A DNA stretch of 64,000 nt from Rebecca billardiae RCC1528. Its lineage: Eukaryota > Protista > Haptophyta. The translations under genes were made by a program, and so were the position numbers. Position 1 is the stretch's first letter; every line of letters begins with the position of its first letter. The stretch is from contig OZ251253.1 of NCBI GenBank assembly GCA_965240325.2, positions 1 to 64,000 on the forward strand, read 5' to 3'. A model generated the notes under the pieces. The model worked only from the letters and a program-made list of their open reading frames with translations, searched no databases and was not told the DNA's origin. Shown piece by piece: positions 27,290 to 32,251 of the stretch.

Positions 27290-29281
27290 ATGGCGGCGCC
27301 CCTCGACGGGCCGGTCGTCATCCGCCCGCCCAACACGGCGGCGTCCGGGCGGCTGCTCGCGTGGCGCGAGGCGGACGGCCGCGCGACGGGCGTGCTCGTC
27401 GACTGGTTCCCCCCGCGGCTGCGCGGCCTCCCCGCCGCCGTGCTCACGCACGCGCACGAGGACCACCGGCGCGGCGTTGTGGAGGCGCTGGCGCAGGGCA
27501 CGGCCGTGTACTGCACGCACGCGACGCGCGCGCTGCTGCTCGCGCGGCTGCCGGATGCGCGCGCGCACGCGCACCGGCTGATCGGCCTCGACTACGCCGA
27601 GCCCGCCCGCCTCGCCGACACGGGCGCGCACCTGCTGCTGAGCGACGCCGGGCACTGCGAGGGCTCGGCGATGGCGCGCCTCGACGGCCGCTTCGGCTGC
27701 GCGCTCTTCACCGGCGACTTCCGGCTGGGCGACGCGCCGGACGCGGGCGCGGGCGAGCCCTCACTCGACGAGCCCGCGCCCGAGTGGCCGTGCGCGCCGG
27801 GCGAGTGCGCGCTGTGCGTGTGCGACACGTCCTTTGCGCCGCTGCGCCCCGCGGCCGCTGACGACGGCGGCTCCGACGACGGCGATGGCGGCGGCGTGGC
27901 GGGCGAGGAGGCGGCGGCGGCGGCGGCGGTGGCGGCGGCGGTGGCGGCGCCCGCGCCGCTCGGCCCGCCGCCGTGCGACGCGCTGCCCCCGCGCCCCGCC
28001 ACCGCCGCCGCCATCGCCCGCCTCGTCTGCCGCTTCCTGCGCGGCACGTGCGCCTCCGCCTCCGCGTGGCTCGACTGCGGCATGCTCGGGCAGGAGAGCA
28101 CGCTGGCGGCGACGGTGGCGGCGCTGCGCAGGGGCGAGGGCGGGGAGGAGGCGCGGGCGGAGCCGCGCGTCGCGTGCGCGCGCCCCGCGTGGGACGACCC
28201 CTCGCCCGCCGCCGGCCGGCTGCGCGAGCTCTGGGCGTGCGAGGCGCTGCGCGGCTGCCTGCTGGATGAGGGCGGCGGCGGCGGCGGCGGCGGCGGCGCA
28301 GAGGCGGAGGCGGAGGCGGGGGCGGAGGCGGCGGGCGATGGCGGTGCGAGGAGCGGCGAGGCGTGCGCGGCGGCGCGGGCGGAGCCGGCGCTGCCCACGC
28401 CGCCCACGCCGCCGCCGCGCGCGCGCGTGCGCCTCTGGCTCCGCCACTTCGAGGCCGCCCCCGGCCGGCCGCGCGCGCGCCCGCCGCGCGCGCGGCCGTC
28501 CGACCTCGCGCTCGTGCCGTCCGCGCTCTGGTGGTGGGCGGGGCGCGAGGCGGCGGGGGTGCGGCCGCGCACGGCGCCGCGGGGGCGGCAGGGCGCGGGG
28601 GCGCGGGCGGAGGGCGGGGTGCAGCTCGAGCTCGACGCCGACGCCGTGTGGCACGCGCTCTGGGCGCAGCACGCGCCCGCCGACGAGCTGCGCGCCTTCG
28701 TGGCCGCGCTCGCGCCGCGCGCGCTCGAGCCGCTCGCCGCGCCGCCGGGCGCGGCCGCGGCCGCGCAGTGCCGCGCGCTCGGCGCGCCGCCGCCGCCGCA
28801 GGTGGATGAGGCGGAGGCGTGCGCGCTGCGCGCGCAGCTCGAGGCGCTCGCGGCCGAGCGGAGCGCGCAGCTCAATGCGAGCGCCGCCGCTGCGGCCGCG
28901 GTCGCGCCGCCGCCGCCGCCGCCGCCGCAGCCGCAGCCGGCAGCGGCGCCGGCAGCGGCCGCCCGGCCGCCGCGTCCGCCGCCGCCGGCCTCGCCGCCGC
29001 CGATGGCCGCGGCCTCGCCCGCGCGCGCGGCGGAGGTGCGCGCGCAGCCGACGCCGGCCGTCGGCCTGTCGCGCCGCCCGTTCCGACGCGCGCCGCCGCC
29101 CTCCGACGGCGGCGCGCCCGCCAAGCGCGCGCGCTCGCTGTCGCTGGCCGCCGCTGCGCCCGCGCCCACCGCGGCGGCGACAGCCGCCGGCTGCTGCGAC
29201 GCTGACGGCGCGCGGCCGGGCGGCGGCGTGGGCGTCGAGCGCCGGCCATTCGCGCGCGTCGACCGTCGGGCGTCCGTCTAG
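27290..29281 (+). CDS. SNM1/Artemis/Apollo (DCLRE1) family metallo-beta-lactamase/beta-CASP DNA nuclease
   Basis: VDWF, LTHAHEDH (HxHxDH), VYCTHATRALL, DAGHCEGSAM, LFTGDFR, CDTSF and WAQHAPADELRAFVAALAP. The C-terminus is low-complexity. Confidence 0.88.
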   Translation: MAAPLDGPVVIRPPNTAASGRLLAWREADGRATGVLVDWFPPRLRGLPAAVLTHAHEDHRRGVVEALAQGTAVYCTHATRALLLARLPDARAHAHRLIGLDYAEPARLADTGAHLLLSDAGHCEGSAMARLDGRFGCALFTGDFRLGDAPDAGAGEPSLDEPAPEWPCAPGECALCVCDTSFAPLRPAAADDGGSDDGDGGGVAGEEAAAAAAVAAAVAAPAPLGPPPCDALPPRPATAAAIARLVCRFLRGTCASASAWLDCGMLGQESTLAATVAALRRGEGGEEARAEPRVACARPAWDDPSPAAGRLRELWACEALRGCLLDEGGGGGGGGGAEAEAEAGAEAAGDGGARSGEACAAARAEPALPTPPTPPPRARVRLWLRHFEAAPGRPRARPPRARPSDLALVPSALWWWAGREAAGVRPRTAPRGRQGAGARAEGGVQLELDADAVWHALWAQHAPADELRAFVAALAPRALEPLAAPPGAAAAAQCRALGAPPPPQVDEAEACALRAQLEALAAERSAQLNASAAAAAAVAPPPPPPPQPQPAAAPAAAARPPRPPPPASPPPMAAASPARAAEVRAQPTPAVGLSRRPFRRAPPPSDGGAPAKRARSLSLAAAAPAPTAAATAAGCCDADGARPGGGVGVERRPFARVDRRASV

Positions 29282-29656: not shown

Positions 29657-31598
29657 ATGCTGCCGCTGCTGGCACTCGCGCACCTCGGCGCGGCGGCGCG
29701 CGGCGCGCGCCCGCTCGCCCGCCCGCCGCACATCGGCGCGCCCCGCGCGCACGTCGTCGCCGCCGCCGCGCCCGCGCCCGCGCCGCCGCCGCCGCCGCCT
29801 TTGCCGCCGCCCACGCCGTACGACGAGCAGTTCGAGACGTTCACGATGCTCGACGTGGACGGCGACGGGTACGTGACGGCGGACGAGCTGCGCGCCGCCT
29901 TCGCCCGCTTCGACCTCCCGCTCACCGACGAGGAGGTCCGCGCGCGCCTCGAGGCCGCCGACCTCGACGCCGACGCGCGGATCGACTGGAAGGAGTTCGA
30001 GCTGCTGTGCGAGAAGGAGGCGAGCACGCCGCAGCCGGAGGCGCCGGGCGTGACGCTGCGCTGGCGGCGCGGGCGCAGCGGCGATGCTGCCGGCGCCGCC
30101 GCCGACCGCCGCGCCGGCGCGGACTACGGCTTCCGCCCCTCTGGGTACTACGGCGCGGACGTGGGCGACCCGTCCACGCCCGCCAACGGCGTGCGCTCGG
30201 CCGTGAAGAACTTCGAGCGCGAGTACGAGGCGATCCGGCGGATCGTGCGGTACTCGCGCGCGGACGACTGGCCCGAGGCGGTGCGCGTGGCGAGCGAGGT
30301 GCTCGACCGCGGCCTCGAGTCCGTCCGCGTCCTCCCGCCGCTGCGGCCGGACAAGGCGCAGTACCCGCCGCTGCCCGCGCTGCGGCTGCGCGAGCGGCTC
30401 TCGCAGCTGCAGCTGAGCAACGAGGCGATCGCCACGCGCGAGAAGCAGCGGATGAAGGCGAAGGAGGCGCTGCTCCGCGAGATGGGCGGGTACGCCTCGC
30501 CGCTGCGCGAGGTGCGCGAGGCCACCTCGCAGCTCACGCCCTGGTTTGTGCTGCTGCCGTACGAGCTCCTCTGCCGGTGCGCCAGCCGCGCGCGCGCGCG
30601 CACACGCACGCGCGCGAGAGAGAGAGAGCGCGCGCGCGCCGGGCCCGGCGCTCGACGTCCGCCGCGCCGGCGCGCGCGCCCGCGCGCGAGGCTGAGGCGC
30701 GCTCCTCCCTGCCCCCGCCCGCCCGCCCTCCCGCCCACCGCGCCGCCACCGCGCTGGGCGCGCAGCTTCCTCGACGCCGTCTTTGACGGCCGGCCGATCG
30801 CGCGCTTCTGGTTCCTCGAGACGGTGGCGCGCGTGCCCTACTTCGCGTACATCTCGATGCTGCACCTGTTCGAGACGCTGGGCTGGTGGCGGGGCAACCA
30901 GCAGCTGCGCCAGCTCCACTTCGCGCAGGAGTGGAACGAGCTGCACCACCTGCTGATCATGGAGGCGCTGGGCGGCGACCAGCGCTGGGTGGACCGCTTC
31001 CTCGCGCGCCACGCCGCCCTGCTCTACTTCGGGGTGCTGTGCGGCCTCTTCTTCGCCTCGCCCTCGCTCTCGTACGGCTTCTCTGAGCTGCTCGAGGCCC
31101 ACGCCGTCGACACGTACGGCGAGTTCCTCGACGCCAACGAGGCGCTGCTCAAGGAGCTGCCCGCGCCCGAGGTGGGCGCCGCGTACTACAACGAGGGGCG
31201 CGACGACTTCCTGCGCAAGGCGATGCGCGCCTCCAACCGCGCCTCGGTCGCGCGGCGGCGCAAGGGGCTGCTGCCGCCCTACCCGGTGCGCACGCTGTAC
31301 GACACGTTTGCAAACATCCTCGCCGACGGTGCGCGCGCACCGCGCCCGAGCGCCACGACGCCGCTCGCGCCGCGCGCACCGCGGACGCGCGCCCGGGCTC
31401 ATCGCAACGCGTGCGCGCGCGCGCGCCCCGACCCACGCAGAGGCGGAGCACGTCTCGTCGATGCGCTCGTGCCAGGACAGCGCGGACGACGTGATGCCAG
31501 GCACGGACGACGCGGCCGGCGCCGACGAGGCCCCCGAGTACGAGTTCGTGGACGAGGACGAGGAGGTGCCCGTCGGCGCGGGCGACAAGCTGGCTTAG
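29657..31598 (+). CDS. PTOX: Plastid terminal oxidase (PTOX/IMMUTANS-like, AOX family) with an N-terminal EF-hand pair, 3 exons (29657-30576, 30766-31328, 31441-31598)
   Basis: Di-iron motifs RFWFLETVARVPYFAYISMLHLFETLGWWR, HFAQEWNELHHLLIMEALGG, SELLEAHAVDTY and, after splicing, NILADEAEH. EF loops DVDGDGYVTADE (29852-29887) and DLDADARIDWKE (29960-29995). The N-terminus resembles a signal plus transit peptide. Confidence 0.93.
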
Positions 31599-31812: not shown

Positions 31813-31915
31813 ATGACAAACCGGTAGAAAACCTGTTTGCCGACTGAGCTAAATCGGCTTGCGCAAGCCGATTTAGCTCAGTCGGCAAATAACGGGTTTT
31901 CTACCGGTTTGTCAT
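31813..31915. repeat. ~103-bp near-perfect palindrome (hairpin/cruciform)
   Basis: A 54-bp spacerless perfect core TTTGCCGACTGAGCTAAATCGGCTTGC|GCAAGCCGATTTAGCTCAGTCGGCAAA, plus 21-bp outer arms ATGACAAACCGGTAGAAAACC / GGTTTTCTACCGGTTTGTCAT. Confidence 0.95.
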
Positions 31916-32251
31916 ATAACCGAGGTCACCTGGGGACACCCCGTGAGGGGCTGTAGTCCTTCCGCCCAGCCCCAGTCTACCGACGGATTTGTTGACGAGG
32001 TTGTTCCTTATTCCCCGCCCGGTCTGTCCCGGGTGTATCCGCCCTGCGTGCTCGTCTGCGCTGTGTGGCTTCGTAGAGGCTCCGGCTTCTGTGTGTGTGT
32101 AGGCGGTGAGCCTTTTCTGCGGCTGTGGCTTTCTTGAGGCTCATTGTGTCATCGTTTGTTGACCCGGGGGTGACTGTACCCGGGGGCTGCGCTTCTTGTG
32201 GAGCCGTGCTCGTCTTCAGTCGGCAAACGGGTTTTCTACCGCGGTTTGTCA
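31814..32251. mobile_element. Possible MITE or foldback element with TG...CA termini
   Basis: A third copy of the arm, TCAGTCGGCAAACGGGTTTTCTACC(GC)GGTTTGTCA, lies at 32216-32251. It is inverted relative to 31814-31847 and direct relative to 31878-31914. No clear target-site duplication. Confidence 0.45.

Follow-up and report, generated by a model that had tools for sequence, protein, structure and literature searches.

The stretch of DNA analyzed here, hereafter the window, comprises positions 1 to 64,000 of contig OZ251253.1 from the haptophyte Rebecca billardiae RCC1528. At 29657–31598 on the forward strand, it carries a three-exon gene with a spliced coding sequence of 1641 nucleotides (nt) and a 546-residue product, in which a pair of calmodulin-lobe-like EF-hands precedes a plastid terminal oxidase (PTOX) of the algal type. 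The window is 73.7% G+C, and the gene appears to be an intact, working gene in the nuclear genome of a haptophyte of Pavlovales type with very GC-rich DNA. An earlier sequence-only reading of the same DNA had proposed this fusion as a candidate Ca2+-gated PTOX. On our analysis, the fusion is real and conserved, a putative regulatory form of an otherwise known enzyme that does not seem to have been described before.

The frame opens at ATG 29657, the first in-frame ATG downstream of a stop, and closes with TAG at 31596–31598. Exon 1 (29657–30576, forward strand) encodes residues 1–306 plus two further nucleotides and contains the presequence, the EF-hand pair, a spacer, the PTOX N-terminal extension, and the start of the catalytic domain. 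Exon 2 (30766–31328, forward strand) encodes the catalytic four-helix bundle, with iron ligands E325, E365, H368, and E417 and the match to the Pfam AOX (alternative oxidase) family; exon 3 (31441–31598, forward strand) completes the DEAEH motif with H498 and adds the acidic C-terminal tail and the stop codon. Both introns are of the GT..AG type: Intron 1 (30577–30765; 189 nt) is in frame and stop-free across its 63 codons, and intron 2 (31329–31440; 112 nt) interrupts the codon of ligand E495. Because the EF pair and 138 residues of conserved PTOX sequence lie within a single stop-free exon, the fusion is independent of any splice. The earlier claim that one exon joins the N terminus, the EF loops, and a lead-in to PTOX is right about the exon but too modest about its content, as exon 1 holds the whole 138-residue PTOX N-terminal extension.

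Transcript support comes from a relative. A 1831-nt cDNA-type contig (L002; JGI 3300016936) contains an intronless open reading frame (ORF) identical to the MMETSP transcript P0257, whose product is 79% identical to the window protein. Its alignment with the window falls into three blocks—29808–30574 within exon 1, 30766–31328 covering exon 2 at 83.6%, and 31440–31556—and the breaks between them are the two introns exactly as predicted from sequence, so that this one transcript runs from the EF-hands through the oxidase without either intron. The single transcript that the sequence-only reading anticipated is thus seen in the relative, no run of this strain being listed. Among four sequencing runs aligned at 80% likeness, useful joints came from X7 only, again from a relative: Its contigs show the same two joints (intron 2 as a GT..AG skip of 112; intron 1 as a skip of 205 with 16 letters between), and one of them connects the EF region with the oxidase. 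The homolog alignment contains no homolog with an insertion at the position of intron 1, and retention of this intron would break a continuous helix (H246–262) of the ortholog model.

The gene structure is also shared with Diacronema lutheri, whose gene KFE25_009696 (protein KAG8471275; 47% identical to the window protein) has three exons. Its second intron lies at a position identical to that of window intron 2, its first lies 60 nt downstream of the window's, and the upstream neighbors of the two genes are homologous; on these three grounds, we regard it as the syntenic ortholog. These data bear on whether an adjacent EF-hand gene and PTOX gene, or a decaying pseudogene, has been read as one gene. 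Such an artefact is scarcely credible: Although long spurious ORFs are common in DNA of 74% GC, intron 1 is in frame and stop-free, and the transcripts come from a relative rather than from this strain, the EF pair shares one exon with 138 residues of conserved PTOX extension without a stop, a single transcript of the relative covers both domains, at least 11 homologs have the same domain order, the ratio of nonsynonymous to synonymous change (omega) is 0.2 in both domains, and the Diacronema genome annotation has one gene.

The oxidase domain scores 77.1 bits with the Pfam AOX model (PF01786), for which the curated threshold is 22.7 (E = 2e−21). The catalytic bundle spans residues 293–507 and the acidic tail residues 508–546. 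The sequence-only reading had counted six retained di-iron ligands, and all six are in place: E325 in LET (30818–30820), E365 (30938–30940) and H368 (30947–30949) in NELHH, E417 in LEAHA (31094–31096), and E495 and H498 in DEAEH (H498 at 31449–31451; the E495 codon split by intron 2). Each of the six columns is at least 90% conserved among 83 aligned PTOX sequences.

Sequence relationships place the protein on the PTOX side of the superfamily. Among named proteins, it matches best those algal ones that are entered as PTOX or "ubiquinol oxidase," with 55–63% identity across the catalytic domain; the source-named PTOX of Haematococcus, Chlorella, Raphidocelis, and Scenedesmus score 210–245 bits, whereas the solved Trypanosoma AOX scores 23–27 bits at 21–24% identity (E ~1e−5; from 2e−5 to 8e−4 across the comparisons). 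The third iron motif, LEAHA, agrees with the PTOX consensus ExHA, as against LEEEA in the trypanosome enzyme. Neither of two marks of a mitochondrial AOX, the LEEEA motif and a close sequence relation, was found in the window protein, and motifs of the PTOX N-terminal extension are present. The PTOX identity proposed earlier is thereby upheld, and we would file the window protein with PTOX rather than with the mitochondrial AOX branch, with one reservation: the replaced PTOX insert motifs and long branch of its clade, described below. The encoded enzyme is predicted to have plastoquinol:O2 oxidoreductase activity at a di-iron center.

Between the EF-hands and the catalytic bundle lies the N-terminal extension of alga-type PTOX (residues 155–292; 30119–30532, forward strand), with its DYGF motif at 30122–30154, an NFxRE helix (motif NFxRE..LRR) at 30209–30241, and LSNEA at 30407–30442. 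We considered the region from the EF pair to the oxidase as a novel linker domain and rejected this: Hidden Markov models built from the N-extension motifs of the window clade match PTOX without EF-hands from Chlorella, Haematococcus, Volvox, Scenedesmus, and many further sources (E down to ~1e−13), so that the apparent linker is the ordinary alga-type extension. The LSNxAVWxRE motif is present in the consensus of the 83 PTOX sequences, and a PTOX N-terminal extension is mentioned in PMC8155901. The true spacer is confined to residues 121–154 (30017–30118, forward strand), a low-complexity flexible tether that has predicted local distance difference test (pLDDT) values of 50–64 in the ortholog model, is 39% identical to the close relative, and is nearly absent in Diacronema. 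Judged by these sequence comparisons, the EF pair is an addition in front of a complete PTOX.

The EF-hand pair itself occupies residues 55–120 (29819–30016, forward strand) and resembles a calmodulin lobe in the ortholog models. Pfam EF-hand_7 (PF13499) matches residues 60–116 with 47 bits against a cut-off of 30 (E = 3.3e−12). The sequence-only reading had called both loops canonical. This is correct for loop 1 (DVDGDGYVTADE; residues 66–77; 29852–29887, forward strand), which matches PROSITE PS00018, but not for loop 2 (DLDADARIDWKE; residues 102–113; 29960–29995, forward strand), where liganding positions 1, 3, 5, 9, and 12 are all present and position 6 is Ala. With position 6 non-canonical and the PROSITE pattern failed, loop 2 may bind Ca2+ weakly or not at all.

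Conservation of the loops can be followed through the Pavlovales clade to which the protein belongs (clade A, described below). Position 6 of loop 2 is Ala or Glu in the window protein, P0257, and Diacronema, in which the PROSITE pattern fails, and the Gly is kept in P0003 and P0004. Of the full-length clade-A sequences, five out of six have D/D/D/[DS]/E at liganding positions 1/3/5/9/12; the exceptions are loop 1 of P0004 (D/N/D/D/E) and the fragment P0192, with Tyr at position 9 of loop 2. We consider binding of Ca2+ by the EF pair probable.

Selection was compared region by region with Nei–Gojobori omega values for the window against the relative's cDNA. Synonymous divergence is high (0.4–1.0), making the individual values rough, yet the contrast between regions is clear: Omega is 0.20 in the EF pair and 0.20 in the catalytic core, 0.31 in the N-terminal extension, 0.44 in the C-terminal tail, 0.77 in the presequence, and 1.3 in the spacer. 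By this measure, the EF pair is under purifying selection equal to that on the catalytic core, and the presequence and spacer drift.

Structural evidence was drawn from orthologs folded with AlphaFold2 (AF2) on the 83-sequence alignments, with the 79%-identical P0001 as a proxy for the window protein; the window protein was searched as exon pieces and as the in-frame, intron-retaining ORF 29657–31327. The P0001 model has a pLDDT of 86.7 and a predicted template modeling score (pTM) of 0.87, with ~12% of the protein disordered, and the mature Diacronema protein has a pLDDT of 88.2 and a pTM of 0.88. In both models, the EF lobe (pLDDT 84–97) shows the helix-loop-helix pattern and a short beta bridge. 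The EF lobes superpose on Ca2+-calmodulin lobes with a root-mean-square deviation (rmsd) of 0.7–1.6 Å over 66–75 residues (Z about 11–12), and the oxidase folds superpose on Trypanosoma brucei AOX with an rmsd of 2.8–3.0 Å over ~205 residues (Z 18.9–19.2).

These models also suggest how the two parts meet. By our own arithmetic, a pTM of 0.87 would be unreachable unless the 72-residue EF lobe were confidently placed against the oxidase, and docking of the lobe on the PTOX N-terminal extension is confidently predicted. Some of the calmodulin alignments run on from the EF lobe to one helix of the N-terminal extension (P0001 189–198; mature Diacronema protein 169–179). These structural alignments point, indirectly, to the corresponding basic amphipathic helix LPALRLRERL (residues 239–248; 30371–30400, forward strand) as a candidate site on which the EF lobe docks within the same molecule.

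The presequence (residues 1–54; 29657–29818, forward strand) consists of a short hydrophobic start (MLPLLALAHLGAAA) followed by an acid-free stretch rich in Arg, Ala, and Pro, and it is a candidate bipartite plastid-targeting signal. Its 54 residues include no acidic residue, 4 Arg, 15 Ala, and 17 Pro. The same layout of a hydrophobic start and an acid-free basic stretch recurs in the clade-A orthologs with complete N termini and in Prymnesium PTOX, and a cytochrome c6-like protein of the Diacronema plastid lumen begins similarly. The N terminus is signal- or transit-like, as the sequence-only reading described it, by composition only. The layout fits plastid import, and we consider a plastid location likely.

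The same composition invites another assignment, in which the protein would go to mitochondria or some other compartment and act there, in the manner of an AOX, as a ubiquinol oxidase that responds to Ca2+. An acid-free, Arg/Ala-rich presequence would suit mitochondria too, and clade A has diverged in PTOX-specific elements; yet plastid PTOX from green, red, and secondary algae are the company in which the catalytic domain falls, at a great distance from the solved mitochondrial AOX, the N-extension motifs specific to PTOX are kept, and the hydrophobic-then-basic start resembles that of the Prymnesium PTOX presequence and the Diacronema cytochrome c6-like protein. We regard a nonplastid enzyme as decidedly improbable and proceed with a plastid PTOX.

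The architecture is not peculiar to this alga. At least 11 homologs have the same domain order, and EF-bearing PTOX occupy three places (clades A, B, and C) in both of our trees, built from 215 and 89 catalytic domains. Placement of the catalytic domain with PTOX, as the sequence-only reading expected, is recovered, in trees that contain no AOX outgroup and whose root is not set. Clade A (support 100/98) unites the Pavlovales sequences: the window protein, P0257, Diacronema, P0003, and the 15-member P0004 cluster (tree rows P0004 and P0264). All six of its full-length rows carry the EF pair.

Clade B is of dinoflagellate type (Togula and Prorocentrum), and in 2 of its 14 members, P0058 and P0133, an inserted EF pair separates the conserved N-extension motifs GTIR and DRPMSA; the other 12 lack the insert. 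All 14 have long N-terminal regions with the conserved hydrophobic segment EQWGLLGL(V/L)VGL, and clade-B presequences are long and dinoflagellate-like. Clade C comprises the MMETSP transcript P0272 together with P0028 and P0275. The first two carry two EF pairs, the second of which lies within the N-terminal extension; P0275 has the second pair only, and its EF-less N terminus may be incomplete. A single exclusive clade for all three groups is rejected by the approximately unbiased (AU) test (P = 0.0007), and a union of clades A and C is not (P = 0.36), with groups defined after the tree was seen. Because the EF-PTOX sit in three places and one clade is rejected, the module was gained at least twice, or once with many losses.

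The fusion is therefore a small family, already deposited without annotation (Diacronema KAG8471275 and MMETSP transcripts); the public Diacronema entry is labeled "EF-hand domain-containing protein." The same architecture among other algae, for which the sequence-only reading had suggested a search, is thus on record in all six full-length clade-A rows, 2 of 14 clade-B members, and clade C. Its view that the architecture is uncharacterized for PTOX agrees with our full-text literature searches, which found no description of an EF-hand PTOX. The EF-hand that it mentions as reported for a euglenid mitochondrial AOX had no counterpart in the literature searched, where a diplonemid mitoproteome paper names AOX and EF-hand proteins separately.

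Three further database observations concern the wider family. An ESM Atlas cluster named "EF-hand domain-containing protein" (score 0.87), mostly from diatoms and with AOX in 100% of its members, was not counted as diatom EF-PTOX, given that its members have no EF-hand family among their annotations and that the name may stem from the Diacronema UniRef label. An ESM Atlas search with P0272 gave no usable match. A second kind of sensor–PTOX fusion occurs in Tribonema minus, where the PTOX-clade protein P0030 carries an N-terminal cyclic-nucleotide-binding domain (PF00027 + PF01786); it resembles the window protein in placing a small-ligand sensor domain before a PTOX-clade oxidase and differs in the sensor and in the PTOX clade.

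Known systems give this arrangement context. Alga-type PTOX (Haematococcus, Chlorella, and Chlamydomonas PTOX2) shares with the window protein the ligand set E/ExxH/E/ExxH, the ExHA third motif, the four-helix bundle, and the N-extension motifs DYGF/NFxRE/LSNxAVWxRE; the N-terminal EF pair sets the window protein apart, as does the Pavlovales clade's replacement of the insert and of NIRDDE. T. brucei AOX (PDB 3vv9/3w54) shares the superfamily (PF01786) and the fold (Z 18.9, 204 aligned residues, rmsd 2.8 Å), but it is 21–24% identical, has LEEEA in place of LEAHA, and lacks the PTOX N-terminal extension and insert. Chlamydomonas calredoxin (PDB 5e37) is likewise a chloroplast sensor–responder with EF-hands packed on a redox domain, and in the structural comparisons, the EF lobe with its adjoining helix matches few entries better (Z 11.8–11.9), although it combines four EF-hands with a thioredoxin and has no oxidase. 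Plant NDB1/NDB2 (EF-hand type II NAD(P)H dehydrogenases) and NOX5/RBOH are electron-transport or oxidase enzymes under built-in, cis-acting EF-hand control; unlike PTOX, they are flavoenzymes of mitochondria or the plasma membrane without a di-iron center.

The nearest functional parallels come from diatoms. KEA3, a thylakoid K+/H+ antiporter, and the PGR5-like DSP1 are secondary-plastid proteins of photoprotection and electron flow whose EF pair is presumed to respond to Ca2+ in the stroma, and diatom KEA3 without its EF-hands behaves as a knock-out (PMC11663583). Their catalytic or transport domains are unrelated to PTOX, and their EF pair is C-terminal rather than N-terminal.

For the window protein, we propose the following mechanism. 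The bipartite presequence would carry the protein into the complex plastid, where the mature enzyme, as is usual for PTOX, would lie on the thylakoid membrane facing the stroma, with the EF lobe sensing stromal Ca2+. Loading with Ca2+ would alter the packing of the lobe on the enzyme's own N-terminal extension—the candidate contact being the conserved LRLRERL helix just before LSNEA—and this repacking would move the enzyme back and forth between two states, one engaged with the membrane and accessible to plastoquinol, the other less active. Current models of PTOX activity invoke stromal pH and a reversible association with the membrane (PMC8155901), and in the diatom plastid, stromal Ca2+ rises under high light, oxidative stress, and H2O2 (PMC11663583). 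The direction of the effect is a guess: If NOX5/RBOH and the NDB-type NAD(P)H dehydrogenases with EF-hands are taken as models, Ca2+ might activate. We lean modestly toward the overall account of a calmodulin-lobe-like EF pair, tethered flexibly before a complete alga-type PTOX and gating it by Ca2+ in this way; regulation of the oxidase activity by Ca2+ is, in our estimate, somewhat better than an even call.

The same fusion could be read without sensing, with the EF lobe as a constitutive structural or anchoring module (for folding, dimerization, or membrane tethering) that has Ca2+ always or never bound. Firm packing of the lobe on the N-terminal extension, as predicted at pTM 0.87 and 0.88, would suit such a role, as would the non-canonical loop 2 of the window protein, P0257, and Diacronema, and purifying selection fits any domain function, not sensing in particular. 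However, most clade-A members keep the liganding side chains of both loops, although overall identity between orthologs falls to 47%; EF pairs were separately gained at different N-extension positions in other PTOX clades, for which a common regulatory benefit is the easier explanation; and plastid EF-hand fusions with a functional need are known (KEA3; PMC11663583). We consider a purely structural lobe unlikely. Recurrence of the fusion in separate clades, together with core-strength purifying selection on the EF pair, suggests that the link between Ca2+ and PTOX is functional rather than accidental.

Several observations count against Ca2+ gating of a plastid PTOX and temper our preference for it. 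On the side of the enzyme, the pan-PTOX insert DLYxFDEFQT...RRP and the NIRDDE motif are replaced in clade A (DDFLRKAMRAS and NILADE in the window protein), over residues 450–497 (about 31193–31448), where pLDDT is lower. This PTOX-specific insert before the fourth iron motif, which we take to be the "exon 8" element, is of similar length in clade A, and 0 of 6 rows match [FYL]DEF[QK] (P0192 is a fragment lacking the insert); outside clade A, the strict pattern occurs in 36 of 77 sequences and most others have near variants. The branch that carries clade A is long as well (0.43 changes per column). With the insert motifs replaced and the branch long, the substrate or kinetics of clade-A enzymes may differ from those of studied PTOX, and the replaced motifs could mean altered stability or regulation.

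Further such points concern the sensor, the targeting, and the transcripts. Loop 2 fails PS00018, with Ala at position 6 in the window protein and Glu in P0257. AF2 tends toward holo-like EF lobes whatever their real occupancy, and the docking is deduced from pTM values and from the extent of the structural alignments rather than read off the coordinates. Downstream of its likely signal cleavage site, the presequence lacks an aromatic residue, and it could also pass for a mitochondrial one. The transcript evidence is the relative's, and X7 may share its source with L002; in the search of sequencing runs, no run contains the stretch, and exon 2 alone gave shares of at most 0.09, in relatives or metatranscriptomes only (the four aligned runs were of this kind).

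The surroundings of the gene were also surveyed. The upstream neighbor is a 663-residue ORF (27290–29281, forward strand) with a weak metallo-beta-lactamase-fold match, and its counterpart (L001:5313–7844) is conserved in position and strand beside the Diacronema ortholog, a case of microsynteny. Positions 1–420 of the window, extending to about 2000, are (CCCTAA)n telomere-type repeats with a GC skew of −0.996, which puts the PTOX gene ~30 kb from a chromosome end. Downstream, a near-perfect palindrome of ~100 nt (31813–31915) begins ~215 nt after the PTOX stop, with 27 + 27 nt at 100% and an outer pair of 25-nt arms at 96%; an extra copy of the arm lies at 32216–32241, 368 nt downstream. The palindrome and arm copy, in an AT-richer spacer, look like a miniature inverted-repeat transposable element or hairpin element.

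On the reverse strand, 33562–63858 is one uninterrupted ORF of 10,098 residues. Its first 300 residues contain diverged modules of ~100–130 residues divided by Pro/Ser-rich rods such as VPPSPPPLPPSPSPPPS, and composition is constant from 40 to 64 kb (GC 0.76, AT skew +0.17). Within this region, Tandem Repeats Finder detected no tandem array and Pfam gave weak matches only; the ORF is probably the gene of a giant repetitive surface protein.

For the biology of these algae, a PTOX with its own Ca2+ sensor would link plastid Ca2+ transients directly to the redox state of the plastoquinone pool, and it would bear on the question of how PTOX switches on only when that pool is over-reduced. A second, EF-less PTOX of Diacronema did not appear among the best 120 matches of either protein search. 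Rather tentatively, and with some doubt, we raise the idea that the EF-hand form may be the only PTOX in Pavlovales, in which case plastoquinone-pool oxidation would be hard-wired to stromal Ca2+. On that reading, chlororespiration, the electron safety valve, and carotenoid desaturation would be tied to stromal Ca2+; together with the separate EF gains in dinoflagellate-type PTOX, this would amount to an unrecognized, convergent layer of Ca2+ control over electron flow in complex plastids. The finding would extend a pattern seen in secondary-plastid algae with KEA3 and DSP1, in which photoprotective proteins carry EF-hands that their plant counterparts lack.

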